Source of the DNA: Zygophlyctis sp. KS116
Taxonomy: Eukaryota; Fungi; Chytridiomycota
Length of the DNA: 10,382 bases
NCBI GenBank assembly: GCA_054661495.1
Contig: BAAFSQ010000328.1
Coordinates: 1-10,382, forward strand
Direction of reading: 5' to 3'
In this document: one piece after another, positions 1 to 10,382 of the stretch
Position numbering within the stretch: position 1 is the first letter of the stretch
Layout: each line of letters begins with the position of its first letter
Position numbers and translations under genes: made by a program
The notes under the pieces: generated by a model
Seen by the model: only the letters and a program-made list of their open reading frames with translations
Told to the model about the DNA's origin: nothing
Databases searched by the model: none

Positions 1-121
1 ATTACTTATCAATTGTGGAGCAAATAGAAAAACATCTAGTCGATATTCTAATTCAAAGACAACACACTGAATATAACAACAACAAGTCGCACTCTCTGCC
101 ACTCTAGCAACTTCAACCGGT

Positions 122-127
122 AAAAAA
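122..127 (-). terminator. RNA polymerase III terminator (T6) of the tRNA gene
   Basis: AAAAAA at 122-127 on + reads TTTTTT on -, starting 10 nt after the tRNA discriminator base at 137. Confidence 0.8.
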
Positions 128-136
128 GAAACCTCT

Positions 137-208
137 TAGCTTGGATAGGTTTCGATCCTACGACTTTTGGGTTATGGGCCCAACACGCTTCCACTGCGTC
201 ACCAAGCT
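137..208 (-). tRNA. tRNA-iMet(CAT): Eukaryotic initiator tRNA-Met (anticodon CAT), intronless, CCA not encoded
   Basis: Minus strand reads AGCTTGG TG ACGC AGTGGAA GCGT G TTGGG CCCATAA CCCAA AAGTC GTAGG ATCGAAA CCTAT CCAAGCT A, a full cloverleaf. Initiator hallmarks are present: A1:U72, three consecutive G:C pairs in the anticodon stem, and T-loop ATCGAAA (A54/A60). Anticodon at 174-176. Confidence 0.97.
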
Positions 209-213
209 ATTTT

Positions 214-217
214 CATA
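214..217. repeat. Target-site duplication CATA, copy 1 (tRNA-proximal)
   Basis: CATA directly precedes the TG of the LTR at 218; the same 4-mer is at 5399-5402 and 10302-10305. A 5-bp TSD does not fit (TCATA vs CATAT). Confidence 0.92.
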
Positions 218-520
218 TGTAACAATTTTAAAATCCGGGTTCTTAATAAACTATTATTTCTTATTTTTAGCTCTCTTATTCTCTCCAAATCTAATTAGGA
301 CTCAGATACAGACAAAACACTTGGTTCTTAGTAACAATTGAGATTTATTACCTTGGTTCTTAGTAACAATTGAGATTTATTACAGAGAACCAAGCGTCAC
401 TACTGATCATTTTAAGCCTCTAAAAGCACCAAGCTGCTGAGCTATGTATTATCATTCCTAGAGCTGATTAAAACCTAAAAAGAAACCCAGACGCTAAACT
501 AAGACCTATTCAACCTAACA
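218..520 (-). repeat. Element A 3' LTR (303 bp)
   Basis: TGTAACAATT...CAACCTAACA on +; identical by eye to 5096-5398; adjacent to the PPT. Confidence 0.97.
320..383. repeat. Perfect 2 x 32-bp tandem repeat inside the element A LTR (also at 5198-5261)
   Basis: CTTGGTTCTTAGTAACAATTGAGATTTATTAC at 320-351 and 352-383. Confidence 0.95.
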
Positions 521-3500
521 ACTCCTCCCTCACTAGAACTAGGCACCTCTTCAAGATTCTCATCTGAATCAACTTTATCATCATTATTCTCGGTGAGAGA
601 CTTCATCTTTCGATTATGATAAAATTTTGAAGTGTCTTTACTGGTATATAAGCGAAGATCATCCTGATGAATTAAGGGCGATAATACAGAGCCATCTGGT
701 CCCATTATGCGGTATAATGAATTTGGTAGCACTTCTATCACAATATAAGGCCCGGACCATGGGTAATCCAAAGATTCCTTAATAAAATTCTTTTTCTTAA
801 CAAACATTCCAGGTCTAAAGACTCCATCTTCCGTATCCTCCCGTAAGTCTTGTTCATTTATCATCTTCTTAGCTTGTTCTTGGGATTTAAAGAATGCAGC
901 TGCACGATCTTGTCCCAAAGATTGTAATTCTCTGATGGTATATTCTTTCTTACCTATTTCTGTACTGAAATCAAAAAGGTTATCAGGAGGACTGTCCCCG
1001 GGGAGTCTTGGATGTCGACCATACAGTAAATAGAATGGAGATTTTTCAGTAACACTATGAATCCTGACTCAGAGCAAAACAGGCCTGATCAAGGACCTTA
1101 TCCCACTTTTCTGGATACTCATCGCAATATCTTCGGAGCATATCTTTTAAAACTCTATTTAGCCGCTCGGTCATCCCATTGGTTCTCGGGTGATAAGAAG
1201 ACGTAAGCAAGTGTCTGACGTGATTCTTTTTCAAATAATTACCAAATACACCTTCCATAAAGTATTTCGCCCTATCAGATATTACAGAATCTGGAATTCC
1301 ATAACTATTTACTATATTTTTGACAAATTCTTTGTAGACAGTTTTAGAAGATCGGTCTTTAGTTGCGACAATGACAGGCCAGCGGGTTGCATAATCCATG
1401 AAAACGAGAACATTTCTATTACCTTGATCAGTTATTGGTAGGTCCTGCAAGAAATCCACTCCCCATCTTTCAAAGGGTAACGGAGCCGGGGGAATCGGGT
1501 GAAGGGGAGCCGATAACTGACTTTGACTCCTAGAAAGTTGACATTGCCGGCAATTACTGATAAAACTATATACTTCATCCTTCATTTGCGGCCACCAGTA
1601 CCTTTCTTTTAGGATCATATAGGTAGATTCTCCTGCCAAATGACCGAGCAATTGATGATATTTTGAAATTTTATCCAATCTGTCTTTGGTAAGAATAAAC
1701 GGCAAGTATATGGGGCTCTCCTTCCTCTTGTTTATTTTTCTTGATAACACATTCCCTTTAAATTCGAAATTTTGAGACTCTTCTTCTATCATTTCCAATT
1801 GTTCTAGCGATAAATCAGAAGGTAAAGGTTGATCTAACAAATATAAACCACAAAGCCAAGGCCAATCACTATCCGGGTGAGACACACCGTCCAGAATAAA
1901 TGAATTCATATAAACATTAGATTTCTTATTTGTCTTACAATCGGCTTTGAGCTCCCATACCTCCTCCGCATACCCAACGAGGCGATCCACTACAGAACTT
2001 GGAACCTTTTCCAAAGTCTCTATGGCAGATGGAGCATTATCCTCGAGGATAGAGGCCTTATTACAAGTTAACCTGGAAAGCGGATCTCCTGGCTGATTTT
2101 CTCCAGGGATGAACATGATGCTAGGAGAATAGTATTCCATTTCTTCTAGCCAAGACCAGACTCTTGGTTTCGGGTTCTTTAGTCCTCTGGCCCAAGTGAG
2201 CGGTTTGTGATCCGAATGAATAAGTATCCCACGACCATCTACGTAACATCTCCATCTTCTTAAACAAATTAAAATAGCTAATAATTCTCTTTCGGTGGTA
2301 GAATATTTTGACTCTGTTTCAGAGAACTTCTTCGACAAAAATGCAATTGGCTGATGACCAGATCCAAAATCTTGAGTGAGCACTCCTCCAGCTGCAAAAT
2401 TGCTGGCATCAGGCCAGATATGGAATTCTTTACTAAAGTCTGGCATTCTTAATACAGGGGCTGACATCAGTGCGCTTTTGAGGTCATCAAATGATTGTTG
2501 GCAACCGGCAGACCATTTAAACTCCTGGTCTTTCTTGGTTAATTCTAACATTGGCATGGCGAGCTTAGTATAGTCTTTGATAAATCTTCGATAGTAATTA
2601 GCTAAACCCAGAAAAGATCGCACTTCGGTAACGCTGCTCGGAGTAACCCATTCCTTTATTACCTTAATCTTGTCTTCGTCCACATGCACCGAATTATTCG
2701 AAATCTTGAAACCGAGATACTTAACTTCTTCACAATAGAATTTTGACTTTTTCATATTTATGAGTAATCCAAAATGATCTAGTCTTTCTAGAACTTTTCT
2801 TAAATGAGATTCATGCTCTTGTTTTGTCTTTGAATAGATCAAAATATCATCTAGATACACTACACAACAGGAATCCACTAAATCTCCTAATACAGAGTTC
2901 ATAATTCTTTGGAAACTACTAGGTGCGTTTCGAAGACCAAACGGCATAACTAGATATTCATACTGACCGTACCTAGTGACAAAAGCGGTTTTCTCGACTG
3001 AACTTTCTTCCATAGGCAACTGGTGAAATCCACTCTCAAGATCAATTACAGAAAATATTGAGCATCCTCCCAACCTGTCAAGATTGTCGTCAATCCGGGG
3101 AATTGGGTAAGAATCTGGTGTAGTAATTCTATTTAAAGCTCTATAGTCAACACACATCCGAAGGGTCCCTCCCATCTTTCTTCTTTGCAAAAATAACTGG
3201 AGCTGCCCATGGTGATGCACTGGGTCGTATCATTCCTTTTTCGGTCAGTTTCTTTATTTGTCTCTCCACTTCCATAAGTTCTCTAGGGGACATACGATAC
3301 TGTTGCTTCTTAATCGGTTGAGATCCGTCTATTACTGCAATTTTGTGAGCTCCTAAACTATGCAACCGTTTTTTGGCGATGAGATCTGGCTCTTTTTGTC
3401 CGATAACTACCGGGAAATCCTGTAGAACGTTTGCTGCCTCTGGACCAACTGAGTATACTTCTGACTGATTTGTCTTCATATGTATTAAGAACAGTTCTTC

Positions 3501-4103
3501 TATCTCGTTGTTTTTCTGAAGTCTTAGCAGCTCATCCTTTCCTATTATACTTCGGTCACACAGTTTAGTTCGTAATTCATTATATTCTAATCCATCATGT
3601 TCCTTTTGCCCATCCTCATCTTCAATTGGATACAACGTTAATGGACCTTCCTTTGTCATTATATCTACCGTATCATTTTTGTGATCCTGTACTGCGGACA
3701 TATCTTTTAACCATCGCTTACCCAGAACTATATCAAAGTCTTTATTGAGATCACAAATCATTGCAGATAAATTGAAAGTGGCACCATTAGGAAAAAGCTG
3801 AGTAACTTTAATGAAATGCTTGAGCTCACGACTGGATTTTGATCCGTCGCCCAGTTTAAGAGTAAGAGGGGGCGAAAATCGTCTCCACTGATCTCTATTG
3901 ACCAAACACAATGCTATTTCAGGCGATATAAAGTTGACAGACGCCCCAGAATCCACCAATGCTGTTATTTGTCTACCGTTCACATTAATTTTGTATTTGG
4001 ATAATCCTGGAACCTCAAAATGTTCATCTTCAATACGAGATAACAGGAGGTGAAAAACTTTATTAGAAATTTTACAACCTTTTTCCCTGCTATCCCCGTA
4101 CCG
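499..4103 (-). pseudogene. pol: Element A pol (protease-RT-RNase H-integrase with GPY/F domain), two frameshifts
   Basis: Protease LVDSGA; RT LRMCVDYRALN, MPFGL, YLDD; RNase H DAS/ERELLA/SDHKPL/DPLSR; integrase HQLLGH..CRQC, VDF/SDR/TERLN, WSGPY. Joins ORF pieces 3147-3983, 1055-3220 and 499-918 across frameshifts at about 3166-3173 and 1066-1072. The frame is open from 4103. Confidence 0.92.
522..531 (-). other. Element A polypurine tract
   Basis: Minus strand GAGGGAGGAG lies one base before the TGTTAGG start of the 3' LTR. Confidence 0.88.
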
Positions 4104-5028
4104 TCAACAGCTAGAATCTTCATTGGCTTCCTTGTTGGAATCTTCCAAACTTTCCCCAACATCCAGATTATTTTTGAAAACATATTTTGATCTGCAGCCA
4201 GAAGCATGTTGACCCTGTCTTTTACAATTAAAGCATCGATTTTCTTGTCGAAACTTGGCTTGTTCTTCTGGACTGAGGCGTCCAAATTGGATTCCTTCCA
4301 TAGGTGTGGGTCCATTTGAAGCCGCATGAGGTCTTCCAAAGTTGACAGATCGATTCATCCCCTTATTTTGAAACACGATATTGTCAATTTGAACTGATAT
4401 CTGTTCCACCTTATCTAATGACAATTCGTCATATAAATCTTTAAGTAACACTTCCTTTTTGACTGCGTCCTTTAACCCATTGATATAATAAGTCTTTGCC
4501 TCATTCTCAGATATGTGATCAATTTCCTCCATTAATTCTCTAAACTTGATGGAATATTCACTGACCGAAGTCCGCTGTTTCAGAGCAGCTAGCTTTCGTC
4601 TAGCCTCTTGAGATACATTAGCCGGACAAAAATGCGTTACTAAGTCTGATAGGAGTCTTTCAGCCGAGGGAGACTTTTGAGATTCGAACCAGCGGTGAAA
4701 CCAGGTGTCAGCAGGTCCTGTCAAAAATCCAGATATAATATCAACGTGATATAAGGGGTCCACAGCCGGTAGACAGCCGCTGGATTTTTCTGGAAAACTC
4801 TTTTACTTTATTTTTCTTTCGATCTCCATCATACTTTTCAGGGCGAGGAATAATCTTTGCATGAGACATTCCTCCAATTGCTTCCATGGCGTGTTGATTC
4901 TGCACGATCGGTGTGGGAACTCTTGAGGCCTCCACACGCAAACGATCATTTTCCATCTCTAAACTTTGTAGCCTAGCAATCAACTCTCTAGCCTGATCAG
5001 GGCTTAAATTTGTAATATCAATATCCAT
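4104..5028 (-). pseudogene. gag: Element A gag (retrotransposon capsid plus zinc knuckle), one frameshift near 4765-4790
   Basis: First ATG at 5028 (MDIDIT...), PRPEKYDG, then in the +1 frame FLTGPADTWF, LKQRTSVSEYSIKF, YINGLK, PTPMEG and CFNCKRQGQHASGC. Ends at TGA 4106-4104. Confidence 0.88.
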
Positions 5029-5082
5029 CCTTATTAGTTTTTCTTTCACTTTCTTCTTCTTTCTTCCAATAGTCGTAGTATT

Positions 5083-5094
5083 TCCAAGCTACCA
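5083..5094 (-). other. Element A primer-binding site for tRNA-iMet
   Basis: Minus strand TGGTAGCTTGGA begins 1 nt after the 5' LTR and is a perfect 12-nt complement of the 3' end (TCCAAGCTA + CCA) of the tRNA encoded at 137-208. Confidence 0.95.
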
Positions 5095-5095
5095 A

Positions 5096-5398
5096 TGTAA
5101 CAATTTTAAAATCCGGGTTCTTAATAAACTATTATTTCTTATTTTTAGCTCTCTTATTCTCTCCAAATCTAATTAGGACTCAGATACAGACAAAACACTT
5201 GGTTCTTAGTAACAATTGAGATTTATTACCTTGGTTCTTAGTAACAATTGAGATTTATTACAGAGAACCAAGCGTCACTACTGATCATTTTAAGCCTCTA
5301 AAAGCACCAAGCTGCTGAGCTATGTATTATCATTCCTAGAGCTGATTAAAACCTAAAAAGAAACCCAGACGCTAAACTAAGACCTATTCAACCTAACA
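5096..5398 (-). repeat. Element A 5' LTR (303 bp)
   Basis: Identical by eye to 218-520; adjacent to the PBS. Confidence 0.97.
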
Positions 5399-5402
5399 CA
5401 TA
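5399..5402. repeat. Target-site duplication CATA, copy 2 (sole spacer between elements A and B)
   Basis: ...CCTAACA|CATA|TGTTGTG... Confidence 0.92.
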
Positions 5403-5613
5403 TGTTGTGTCTTAGTGCAACAAGTAACTTAGAGTCTAGGAGTAGTTCGGATCCTTAGGTTAGCTTCCATGCTTTGTGCTTGTTAAGGCTTAGTGCTTGA
5501 ATTGCTTGTTTAAACTGATTAATTGAGGCTTGAATCTTTGGTACTTTTTAATACAAAGTATTTTGGTTGTTACTCATTATTATATACTGTCTGAGCTATT
5601 CCAGACCGTAACA
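5403..5613 (+). repeat. Element B 5' LTR (211 bp)
   Basis: TGTTGTGTCT...ACCGTAACA; matches 10091-10301 with one substitution (G5540 vs T10228). Confidence 0.97.
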
Positions 5614-5615
5614 TT

Positions 5616-5627
5616 TTAAAAAGTACC
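5616..5627 (+). other. Element B self-priming PBS (complementary to 5540-5551 in its own LTR)
   Basis: No TGG follows the LTR. TTAAAAAGTACC (5616-5627) is the exact reverse complement of GGTACTTTTTAA (5540-5551). Confidence 0.82.
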
Positions 5628-5661
5628 TCAATAATATTGAAAATAATCTATCTGAAAAATT

Positions 5662-8600
5662 ATGTCTCAATCGGATCCTTCTCAAACTCCATCGAGAGCT
5701 TTCTTCCCTGAATCGGTTGAAGTACCGAACCAGTTTGGAACACCGTATACTTCTCCTGGAGCTTTCTTACCTGAACCTGTTGAAGTTCAGTCTCAGTTTG
5801 GAATTCTCCTGAATCTAGTCCAATCTTTACAAGGACAAGTAAATCTTTTGTCTCAAAGAGCAAATAATGTGCCTGAAAAAATGCCGAAGTTGGTATTACC
5901 TGCTCAATATGATGGATCTGCAGAAGATTTCGACGTTTTCTGGAGTGACATCAATGACTACATTAAGGTCAAATCTTCAAGCTTCTCAAATGATTTCTCA
6001 AAAATAACTTTTGTTTCAGGGCTACTTAAAGATAGTGCAAAAATCTGGTTCCAGTCTTTAAGGGATAGATCAATGACTTATGATGTGCCAGAGTTACGGG
6101 ATTTCCAAATATTCTCCAGAAGCTTTAAAGAACACTTTATGAATCGGGAAGCTAGGTCTCTTGCAAAAGCAAAGTTAGATAGGTTAACTCAGGGAAAAAC
6201 TAAAATGCACAAGCATTTGGCTGCAGTTGAATCACTTATTATTCAGTCAGGTTTAGATGTGTATTCTGATTTAGGAATTGAAACATTTATAAAGACTTTG
6301 AATGAAGATGTAAAACTTGACTTACGTGATGCATTCCTCTATAATGAATCATGGTCTAAGGATTATAATGCCATAAAGAAATATCTCAAGGCAAAGGAAA
6401 CAAATAGGATTGTTATCCAAGAGGATTCTTCGTTGACAGTTTCTATTCCTAATGATCCTATGGATATCAGTAGTCTTGGTCACTCTAAAGTCCAAACTAA
6501 ATGGAAATCTTTAAAAAATGATGATTGGAAAATTTTAAAGGAAGCTTTACTGAAAACTAAATGCTGTTTAATCTGTCGGGACTATGTAGAATTTCGACAT
6601 TCTGAAAATTCCTCATGCAAGTATAAAGGGAAGTCATTCACGGAAATTTTCCAAATAAATGATAATTCAGCTTACCTGTTCTCTTTGAGCGGGCCGTCGT
6701 TCCTGGTCAAAATATCTCTGGAAAATCAATCCACTCTGGCTTTAATAGATACAGGTGCTCAAGGAGATACATATATTTCATCACAATTTGCTAAAAAATT
6801 AAATTTGCGTCTAGTCACGACAAGACCGCAGCCAATTTGCCAATTTCAGGGTGTGGAGGTGGATACTATATCACATTCTACAGATCCTATTACTATCATT
6901 ATTCAGGATAGAAAGTTTATCATTAAACCGAAAGTGATTAAAAAGCTGGCTTACGATGTGTTACTCGGCTTTGATTTCTTCGCTAAACATAATATCAAAC
7001 TTGATTGTAAAAAGAAATTGCTGGAATTTCCGAGATTATCAAGTGCAAAAAGCAATATAAATATTGGTGTGATAACCTTATCAACTTTGAAGAAATTAGC
7101 GTTAAACGAGAAGTTACCGGTTTATTCGCATTACATTGATTTTTCGGCTACTATTAACATTTCATCAATGAATTTTGATGCTGATAAATTAGACCGTAAA
7201 ATACCTAGCTTTCTTAAAGATTATAGTGACGTCTTTGATTTACAAAGATTAAAGACTCTACCAAATTACAAAGAATGTCATGCGATGCCTGTAGACATTC
7301 TTCCTGATTCAGTAATGCCTTCGTCAAAACCATATAAAATTTCAGCCAAGGAAGAAGCAGCTCTTCGGGAAGCACTTGATGATGGATTAAAATCAGGGAT
7401 AATCAGCATCTCTGAAGCTACTGGTGGATGTCCAATCTTATTTGTGAAAAAACCGGATGGATCTCTTCGGCTTTGCGTTGACTTTAAGGCACTAAATCAA
7501 ATTACTGCACATAGCCAAGCTATTCTCCCGAATATAGAGGATATAATTAATGATCTACAGCCATCTACCAGGCCGCTCTTCTCCAAAATCGATCTTAAGG
7601 GAGCTTTTCATCAACTTAGAATCAAGAAAGGGGACGAGTTTAAAACCACGTTTATTACAAAGATGGGGAAATATCAATATAATGTTATTCCATTTGGTTG
7701 TAAAAATGCACCTGGGCACTTTCAGAAAGTAATGGACTCTATTTTCCATGAGCTTATCGGTAAAGGTTTGCACGTCTATCTTGATGATATATTGATCTAT
7801 GAATCCGATCCGGCTAAACATCGAGAAATACTTCTTAAATCATTACAAATTCTACAAAAAAAAATCTGATTGCCAATCTGGAAAAATGTCTTTTTGAAGT
7901 TAGTGAAGTCGAATTTTTAGGATATAAGTTATCATCATCTGGTATCAGCATGCAGCACGGAAAGGTAGATGCAATAGTAGGATTTAAACAGCCCGAAAAT
8001 GTAAAGTCCTTACAGAGGTTTTTGGGACTCTGTAATTATTATCGGGGATTCATTAAAAATTACTCTTTTTTGGCAGAACCATTATTTAAACTACTTAAGA
8101 AGAATGAAGAATATAAGTGGACACAAAATACCGAAAAACACTTCAAATTATTAAAATCCAGTTTCTCGCACAAAGACTTTTTAGTTATACCAAATCGATT
8201 GAAGCCTTTTATTCTCTACACTGACTGTTCAAAAGTAGCTCTGGGAGGAGCGCTTCATCAGCTTGATTCAAATGGTGCCGAAAAACCGGTTTCTTTTTAT
8301 AGTCGTACATTGACCCCCGCAGAGAAAAATTATGCAATTTATGATAAGGAAATGCTGGCTATCAAGGCATCATTTGAACACTGGCGACATCTTCTAATAC
8401 ACACTGACGAAGCAGTTACGGTATATTGTGATCATCGAAACTTGACATATTTCAAGAAACCTCAGCTGTTAAATGAGAGACAATCCAGATGGAGCGAATT
8501 TTTGGCCGACTTTAATTTTATTGTTTCATATATACCTGGAAAACTCAACGTAGTTGCTGACTGCTTGTCAAGATCAGATTCTCTAGAAGAGGCTAAAAAT

Positions 8601-10103
8601 AAAACTTTGCTGCACAAGTCTATCTGTACAATCAATCAGGCTAACTCGTTAGGAAAATTGGTTTCGAGTCAAAATGATGGACTGCCTAAATTGATTGAGA
8701 CCTCAAACGCTGACTCTCTCTTTGATCTTTCTATAATCAAATCAAAATTGCCTGAACGCTCATCAGAAATGGAAGTGTTAACCGATCCCTCAAAAACGTC
8801 AATGGGAAACTGGCCTGTCTTCTTCTACTTTTCTTTACGCAACCAGCCATTACCTCATCTGTTACCTAAAATGTACAAAAAACATCATATGGTTATTAAG
8901 GATGGAAAATTGCTGCGAAGAATTAAATATCTCGACATCACTTACTGGGTGCCTTATGTAGCTGAATCATTACGTGAATCAAAGTTGAAGGAATTACATT
9001 GTACCTTAGGTCATTTGAGCACCGATTCTATTTTTGATTCACTCCGAACCCGTTGTTGGTGGCCACAACAATTGCAAAGCTTAAAGCAGTTCGTTGAACG
9101 TTGTTCAATATGTCAGAAAAACAGAATAAATAAATCAAGCAGCCAGCCACAAATACCAATACCACCTTCAGGATTACCATTTTATCGTTGGAGTATCGAT
9201 TTTATCCAAGATCTTCCTGAAACAGAGAATGGTAACAAAGATATCATTGTGGCAGTCGATCATGCGACCCGGTTGGTAGTAGCGGAGGCAAGTAAAGACC
9301 GCACTGCTAGAACAGTAGCTCTATTTCTTTTCAAACTGATGATAAAATACGATGCACCCCAAGAAATAATCACTGATCGTGCAAACTGTTTCTTAGGAGA
9401 TGTAATGAAAGAATATCTAGCAATTCAATCAATTAATCATTTTCCTACTACCTCGTATCATGCAAGGACAAATGGAATGGTAGAGAGGGTCAATGGAGTA
9501 TTAGGATCTATAATTACAAAAATGACTCTTGGAACTAGAGAAAAGTGGGACAAGTTTGTTGAACCTGCAGCCTTTATATTGAATGCTCGAAAACACTCGA
9601 CAACTGGATTCTCTCCCTTTTTTCTAGCCTATGGACTAAATCCCCGACTCCCTGGGGACGTCTTTCCGCCATGCATATACTCAAAGAAGAATGATAATGA
9701 TGTTTCTTTAGCCACTCACCGTGAATTGACGCGTTTGGGCCAATACAGGGCGCTAGCACTCAAGAAGTCCCAAGAAAACGCAAAGGAATATGCCTCCACA
9801 ACTTCTGAATACGTTCAGTTTCAAATAGGTGAATTCGTCAAATTGAAAAACTTCACTAAAAAGAAATTTGAATTCCGTTGGAATGGGCCTTTCATCATTC
9901 AAGGAATCGGTCCACACAACACGTATTATCTTAAAAAGGCAGATGGCACTCTTTTAGATCACCCACAAAATGGAATCCATTTAGCTACTTGGGTTAGCAT
10001 TAAGGAATTAAATCAATCAAATGTTAAATTAACTCAACGAAATAATACTATGACCTCTGGAAATGTAACTAACAGTGGAGGGGAGAGTACTGTTGTGTCT
10101 TAG
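5662..10103 (+). CDS. gag-pol: Element B Gag-Pol polyprotein (about 1480 aa if one A is restored in the A9 run at 7856-7864)
   Basis: Gag LPAQYDG..KITFVSGLLKDSAKIWF and DPMDIS; protease LIDTGA; RT LRLCVDFKALN and YLDD; after a -1 shift NLIANLEKCLFEVSEVEFLGY; RNase H TDCS/DKEMLAI/CDHRNL/ADCLSR; integrase HCTLGH..CSIC, IDF/TDR/VERVN, WNGPF. Joins ORFs 5662-7869 and 7950-10103. Confidence 0.92.
10077..10087 (+). other. Element B polypurine tract
   Basis: GGAGGGGAGAG ends 3 nt before the 3' LTR. Confidence 0.88.
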
Positions 10104-10301
10104 TGCAACAAGTAACTTAGAGTCTAGGAGTAGTTCGGATCCTTAGGTTAGCTTCCATGCTTTGTGCTTGTTAAGGCTTAGTGCTTGAATTGCTTGTTTA
10201 AACTGATTAATTGAGGCTTGAATCTTTTGTACTTTTTAATACAAAGTATTTTGGTTGTTACTCATTATTATATACTGTCTGAGCTATTCCAGACCGTAAC
10301 A
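10091..10301 (+). repeat. Element B 3' LTR (211 bp)
   Basis: Direct repeat of 5403-5613, 210/211 identical by eye. Confidence 0.97.
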
Positions 10302-10305
10302 CATA
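10302..10305. repeat. Target-site duplication CATA, copy 3 (distal)
   Basis: ...CGTAACA|CATA|TGAAAAATC... Confidence 0.92.
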
Positions 10306-10382
10306 TGAAAAATCGGGGTTTTCCAACAGATTGAGTTTAGAGTAAGATTGAGGTTTAACTAACTAAAATCAACAGATTTCTT

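Follow-up and report, generated by a model that had tools for sequence, protein, structure and literature searches.

Two Ty3/gypsy retrotransposons on one four-base target site upstream of an initiator tRNA-Met gene in the chytrid Zygophlyctis sp. KS116

Introduction

A number of retrotransposons with long terminal repeats (LTRs), of the Ty3/gypsy group, integrate just upstream of tRNA genes. Ty3 of Saccharomyces cerevisiae inserts 1-4 bp upstream of the RNA polymerase III (Pol III) start site, and similar upstream-of-tRNA targeting is described for Tca8, Ylt1, Tyl3, Tyl6 and DGLT-A (PMC5911963, PMC5006619, PMC4600332). In Ty3 two parts of the integrase, a long helical linker and a C-terminal chromodomain, dock on TFIIIB and set the position (PMC8632968). 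Tj1 of Schizosaccharomyces japonicus integrates upstream of tRNA genes, 5-11 bp from the mature 5′ end, and at one tRNA gene there are three inserts, at -5, -6 and -7 (PMC4600332). Several gypsy families can use one such target, as do Ylt1, Tyl3 and Tyl6 in Yarrowia lipolytica (PMC5911963) and DGLT-A.1-5 in D. purpureum (PMC5006619). Here we describe a locus of the chytrid fungus Zygophlyctis sp. KS116 where two LTR retrotransposons, designated A and B, have been inserted at the same four bases upstream of an initiator tRNA-Met gene. The window analyzed is a stretch of 10,382 nucleotides, positions 1 to 10,382 of the forward strand of contig BAAFSQ010000328.1 (assembly GCA_054661495.1).

The shared site lies, counted from the tRNA's mature 5′ end, at -6 to -9, inside the range of -5 to -11 measured for Tj1. 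The duplications made by A and B are 4 bp long, in contrast to the 5-bp duplications of Tj1, which also has LTRs of 244 bp; the two elements are likened to Tj1 by description, not by sequence. The duplications of Ty3 likewise span 5 bp, at a distance from the mature end of about 15-17 bp, and DGLT-A is found 13-33 bp from that end. The initial annotation of the window had named Ty3 and DGLT-A as the known elements that target tRNA genes but had missed Tj1, with which the position falls inside a known range. Its observation that two families use one target holds at this locus, but such sharing was already documented in Yarrowia and D. purpureum, as cited above.

Results

The two elements abut through one copy of the target site

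Read from the tRNA gene, the order of components is initiator tRNA-Met gene, ATTTT, CATA, element A, CATA, element B, CATA (Table 1). Alignments, Infernal and ARAGORN show that this layout, as first annotated, is correct to the base. There is no extra base between A and B, and the elements abut via a single 4-bp CATA. Because this middle CATA is common to both elements, with no base between, the arrangement is the result of two separate integrations at the same staggered cut, each generating a 4-bp duplication. Thus the shared CATA and the 4-bp duplications uphold the earlier claim of two independent integrations into one site at -6 to -9. The four LTR ends are all intact, and the three copies of CATA are clean. 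The nesting of A in B, or of B in A, is ruled out by the intact LTR ends and the single common copy at the junction, and with elements of different lineages a tandem duplication can be set aside too, as the initial annotation had concluded. Both duplications, at this one locus, lie within the few to about 30 bp upstream of the gene that are typical of gypsy elements targeted by Pol III.

Other placements of the boundaries were tried and rejected. A 5-bp duplication cannot be made for either element, since extension gives TCATA against CATAT, which do not match. When the LTR boundaries are moved by one base the fit is lost; only the TG...CA ends with a 4-bp duplication suit both elements.

Table 1. 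Features of the locus, in order along the window. RT, reverse transcriptase. The frame breaks in A were located by tblastn against the intact relative L002, together with frame read-outs.
Feature	Positions	Strand	Sequence or length	Remarks
T6 run, Pol III terminator	122-127	minus	T6	10-15 nt downstream of the tRNA gene
Initiator tRNA-Met gene	137-208	minus		anticodon CAT; Infernal, Rfam RF00005, 57.8 bits
Spacer	209-213		ATTTT, 5 bp	from mature tRNA 5′ end to target site
Target-site duplication, copy 1	214-217		CATA	-6 to -9 from mature tRNA 5′ end
Element A	218-5398	minus	5181 bp	Ty3/gypsy LTR retrotransposon
A 3′ LTR	218-520	minus	303 bp	TG...CA ends
A tandem duplication in 3′ LTR	320-383	minus	32-bp unit	perfect
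A polypurine tract	522-531	minus	GAGGGAGGAG	adjoins 3′ LTR
A frame break 3	about 1068-1070	minus		integrase core
A frame break 2	about 3171-3181	minus		protease/RT boundary
A in-frame UGA	4104-4106	minus	UGA	between gag and pol, otherwise one frame
A frame break 1	about 4726-4775	minus		gag
A primer binding site	5083-5094	minus	TGGTAGCTTGGA	1 nt past 5′ LTR
A 5′ LTR	5096-5398	minus	303 bp	TG...CA ends
A tandem duplication in 5′ LTR	5198-5261	minus	32-bp unit	perfect
Target-site duplication, copy 2	5399-5402		CATA	right copy of A and left copy of B
Element B	5403-10301	plus	4899 bp	Ty3/gypsy LTR retrotransposon; transcription leads away from the tRNA gene
B 5′ LTR	5403-5613	plus	211 bp	TG...CA ends
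B predicted self-primer	5540-5551	plus	GGTACTTTTTAA	in 5′ LTR; reverse complement of 5616-5627
B primer binding site	5616-5627	plus	TTAAAAAGTACC, 12 nt	2 nt past 5′ LTR
B frame break	7856-7864	plus	A9 run	inside RT
B polypurine tract	10077-10087	plus	GGAGGGGAGAG
B 3′ LTR	10091-10301	plus	211 bp	TG...CA ends
Target-site duplication, copy 3	10302-10305		CATA

A and B belong to different Ty3/gypsy lineages

The elements were searched in separate pieces, as they read in the contig. In both elements Pfam identifies capsid, protease, RT, RNase H and integrase in the order of Ty3/gypsy, A being encoded on the minus and B on the plus strand. Both have the features expected of Ty3/gypsy elements (Metaviridae), namely LTRs with TG...CA ends, a primer binding site, a polypurine tract and a target-site duplication, and for both the best sequence match among solved structures is the Ty3 polyprotein (7q5b). 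The RNase H-integrase parts of A and B are 32% identical, and there is no significant similarity between the LTRs (best blastn match 22 nt, E = 0.007), in keeping with the unrelated LTRs in opposite orientations that had been annotated. Because of this Pol identity, the unrelated LTRs and the unlike priming and gag-pol strategies described below, we assign A and B to different Ty3/gypsy lineages, each complete in structure as judged from its sequence.

The tRNA gene upstream of which they lie has the marks of a eukaryotic cytoplasmic initiator, which can be read from the sequence as A1:U72, A73, an anticodon stem with three G:C pairs and the T-loop GAUCGAAAC. ARAGORN reports a tRNA-Met (CAT) at 136-209. 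The gene looks functional, since it scores well, contains internal promoter boxes and is followed by a T6 terminator.

Element A is predicted to be primed by initiator tRNA-Met and carries inherited frame breaks

The LTRs of A show 0 mismatches on pairwise alignment. The primer binding site comprises 12 nt complementary to the 3′ end, including CCA, of initiator tRNA-Met. A TGGTAGC... site is likewise found after the LTR in the A relatives L001, L002, L003, L084, L087 and L090. Relatives with such a site come from several datasets, with a GC-rich host and Absidia glauca among them. The site of L002 pairs with 13 nt of the same initiator tRNA-Met. In relatives from other hosts the acceptor-stem complements differ slightly, which suggests that the primer site in the A clade follows the initiator tRNA of each host. 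At the locus, A adjoins the gene for its own presumed primer.

The gag and pol sequences of A are separated by an in-frame UGA. The context UGA-CGG-UAC/UGC-GGG is kept in A-clade relatives down to about 45% protein identity, and the equivalent UGA is found at about 979-981 in L002, about 4482-4484 in L084 and about 1374-1376 in L087. Because the downstream context is conserved in this way, the UGA suggests programmed stop-codon readthrough, as in Tj1 and murine leukemia virus (MLV).

Each LTR of A also holds a perfect 32-bp tandem duplication. In L001, a metagenome copy that is 98-99% identical, the LTR is shorter by 32 bp, which fits a single unit. The duplication appears to vary between A copies and to be older than the present insertion.

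The reading frames of A are broken at three points, identified using the 85% identical relative L002 as reference. In run SRR35554702 a Logan contig is identical to A but for 1 base in 4634, and its open reading frames (ORFs) are broken in a matching series, so that sequencing or assembly noise can be ruled out as the source of the breaks. The integrase break is also held in common with a 98-99% copy in an ENA metagenome. The A copy is thus defective, with three frame breaks that were inherited. Because identical LTRs are found beside breaks that recur in near-identical copies elsewhere, this copy was most likely mobilized in trans by an intact relative, and the data suggest that A belongs to a defective sublineage that is still mobilized in this way.

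Element B is predicted to be self-priming

The LTRs of B differ by 1 mismatch, with G at 5540 and T at 10228. The coding sequence is a single gag-protease-RT-RNase H-integrase frame with one break, in a run of nine adenines, and the copy is defective. Priming is predicted to be of the Tf1/Tj1 type, in which a segment of the 5′ LTR pairs with the primer binding site that follows it. A B-family relative, L086 (43% identical), has an equivalent 11-nt self-primer pair. The sole difference between the LTRs of B coincides with base 1 of the 12-nt self-primer predicted above, and the chance of one random difference landing within the primer is about 6%. With the G of the 5′ LTR the pairing with the primer site is 12/12; the T of the 3′ LTR would give 11/12.

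The gag of B has a weak match of the sushi/RTL type (PF16297). Its relatives are Ty3/gypsy elements in metagenomes, and those with names are mostly fish sushi-like elements. Exact-protein look-ups with both ORFs of B found no record.

The predicted integrases share a fold with that of Ty3

Structures were predicted using AlphaFold2 for the integrase of an intact A-family element (P0001:740-1146; mean predicted local distance difference test score, pLDDT, 85.8) and for that of B (window 8847-10100; pLDDT 83.0). Both models comprise a zinc-binding N-terminal domain, a catalytic core, a helical linker of 36-40 residues and an SH3 domain, and the best structural matches of both are the integrases of prototype foamy virus (PFV) and Ty3. 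A Ty3-like chromodomain in the integrase tails was considered and ruled out, since the predicted models end shortly past SH3. On the basis of these models the integrases of A and B may work like that of Ty3, minus one of its defining parts.

A and B can be aligned through about 130 residues between RNase H and the zinc domain of the integrase, including a DWP...QPLP motif; the common segment corresponds to residues about 400-510 of the 721-amino acid ORF of A and about 230-340 of ORF2 of B. The model of the B integrase also has an N-terminal extension. Located between RNase H and the zinc domain, such an extension could be a surface for contact with a host factor.

Relatives of A and B

The closest proteins are found in metagenomes only, and the nearest named relatives, in Absidia glauca, Closterium and a chytrid, are about 40% identical. 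The matches listed from a metagenome scan with an A-family profile were distant gypsy elements only, at 28-49% identity. Scans of viral contigs for A and B gave no match, nor did scans of prokaryote genome contigs for A or an exact search for the 5′ half of the tRNA. Among the database matches there was no close sequence relationship of A or B to DGLT-A or to Ylt1/Tyl.

Discussion

How did two lineages come to use the same four bases? It cannot reasonably be supposed that untargeted insertion placed two unrelated elements on one staggered cut; as a coincidence this is effectively impossible. We consider it likely that two Ty3/gypsy lineages each integrated once at the same cut upstream of the initiator tRNA-Met gene, in a process linked to Pol III, and we favor Pol III targeting because the site lies where known gypsy elements are delivered by the Pol III machinery. 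The Tj1-like position and, for A, orientation, the domains of the predicted integrases and the presence of one distant A-clade relative near a tRNA gene in Absidia glauca speak for it too. Each integrase complex would be tethered to the Pol III initiation complex (TFIIIB/TFIIIC) on the tRNA gene, and the tether would direct strand transfer to the transcription start or to a point just upstream, as has been shown for Ty3 and is implied for Tj1. After the first insertion the tRNA-proximal CATA would stay at the same distance from the gene, where it could be reused by a second targeted event. The initial annotation had spoken of base-precise targeting of Pol III genes. Direction by Pol III stands as the most reasonable cause, but "base-precise" describes two events at one locus and overstates the case, given that the nearest characterized analogue, Tj1, scatters from -5 to -7 at one gene (PMC4600332).

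A number of observations weigh against this explanation. The junction of A and B is known from the assembled contig. No chromodomain was found after SH3 in either integrase, either in the AlphaFold2 models or using Pfam. The close relatives were retrieved only on metagenome contigs that are LTR-collapsed or circularly permuted and lack flanks. A tRNA gene was found in 0 of 83 loci, 80 of which are those of distant elements from the metagenome scan, among the matches listed; elements so distant are no guide to the A and B families themselves. Of four distant A-clade relatives that have flanks, the one in Absidia glauca lies close to a tRNA gene, whereas around the remaining three none was seen. 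The Absidia glauca element (L090 10772-10986, LT553428.1; about 40% identity) ends 22 bp from a tRNA-Ser(AGA) gene, but it is located downstream of that gene, just past the T-run, and not upstream. It has an initiator tRNA-Met primer site and LTR segments that are 100% identical, the start of the LTR being hidden by an assembly gap. This single case may reflect targeting that is linked to Pol III but directed to the opposite flank of the gene. Lastly, the empty site can be rebuilt by removing both elements and two copies of CATA, leaving 209-217 joined to 10306-10312. It reads ...ATTTTCATATGAAAAATC... and contains a perfect 14-bp palindrome, TTTTCATATGAAAA, the center of which is 1 bp from the middle of the duplication.

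Using a simple composition model, the chance of such a palindrome within +/-3 bp is about 6.5e-4, and an alternative can be built on it, in which the site was chosen by DNA sequence or shape, both integrases preferring the palindromic TTTTCATATGAAAA or an existing LTR edge, with the closeness of the tRNA gene incidental. Such a preference could act twice. Since an LTR begins with TG and closes with CA, the CATATG context is regenerated at both copies of CATA after the first insertion, and either copy could be reused. Yet two proteins that are only about 32% identical would both have to possess one strong sequence specificity, a trait unusual among retroelement integrases, the palindrome is off-center by the base noted above, and the site is exactly where Pol III factors direct known Ty3-like elements. 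We judge selection by sequence or shape improbable, although of the alternatives it survives best.

In what order did the elements arrive? If distance is measured from the tRNA gene B would have come first and A second, because the proximal CATA keeps its position. The initial annotation had likewise taken A to be the younger element and had found support in the LTR mismatches. The order follows from such a ruler, but the support does not: 0/303 in A against 1/211 in B agrees with B first without carrying any statistical weight, as at the rate of B the probability of zero differences in 303 bp is about 0.24. The structure alone gives no order, and these mismatch counts leave room for the reverse, with Pol III targeting bringing in A first and B entering the distal CATA later, 5.2 kb from the tRNA gene and independently of Pol III. 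That would require an untargeted event to land on exactly the same 4 bp, while measurement from the tRNA gene predicts reuse of the proximal copy with no added assumption, and we therefore give the reverse order little credence. The least probable alternative is an assembly artefact, with A and B on different haplotypes or nuclei or joined as a chimera through short repeats, for although such repeats do break or mis-join assemblies, and every related metagenome contig is LTR-collapsed, assemblers do not make chimeras through 4 bp of common sequence, the four LTR ends and three duplication copies are clean, and even then two families would occupy the same 4-bp site.

Returning to the likely explanation, integration directed by Pol III, the elements can be compared with those for which such direction is known. 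Tj1 resembles A in its in-frame stop between gag and pol and in lying in the same orientation as the tRNA gene, and it resembles B in its self-priming (PMC4600332). Thus readthrough and self-priming, combined in Tj1, are here split between the two elements. B differs from Tj1 in being opposite in orientation to the tRNA gene. Ty3 integrates at tRNA genes as do A and B, in its case at the Pol III start site, and as a fellow Ty3/gypsy element it shares with A a primer site matching initiator tRNA-Met, unlike the self-priming B. Its integrase, like those predicted for A and B, has a long helical linker that joins the catalytic core to the C-terminal domain. In contrast to both, Ty3 employs a +1 frameshift between gag and pol, and its integrase has the chromodomain that sets position, which is absent from both predicted models (PMC8632968). 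The integrase of DGLT-A from dictyostelids lacks a chromodomain (PMC5006619), as is predicted for A and B, while its primer site matches no known tRNA. The Tf1/sushi group shares with B a self-primer pairing within the 5′ LTR, a single gag-pol frame and the weak sushi/RTL-type gag signal, but Tf1 has a chromodomain and targets Pol II promoters, whereas B is predicted to lack the domain and lies at a tRNA gene.

A stronger proposition may be considered, that two distant gypsy lineages without chromodomains, unlike in priming and gag-pol strategy and both making 4-bp duplications, independently came to integrate at the Pol III start site with the exactness of a single nucleotide. We find this doubtful. 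If it were true there would be a positional ruler other than the Ty3 chromodomain, such as the N-terminal extension or the helical linker acting on TFIIIB.

The locus is an example of the tRNA-gene targeting known for Ty3, Tj1 and DGLT-A, and not a new kind of system; taken alone it opens no new question. What varies here are the details, in the 4-bp duplications, the predicted integrases without a chromodomain, and the use of the same four bases by two lineages. With three copies of one 4-bp duplication, it provides an unusually clean record, in nature, of the reuse of a site. By targeting Pol III genes, retrotransposons can increase in number in a compact genome and spare its coding sequence. 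Such targeting has evolved repeatedly, and to the elements that show it the locus adds two gypsy lineages that are distant from each other. If specificity for tRNA genes should hold genome-wide in the A and B families, their integrases, which are predicted to lack the chromodomain, could usefully be compared with that of Ty3 to learn how position is measured.

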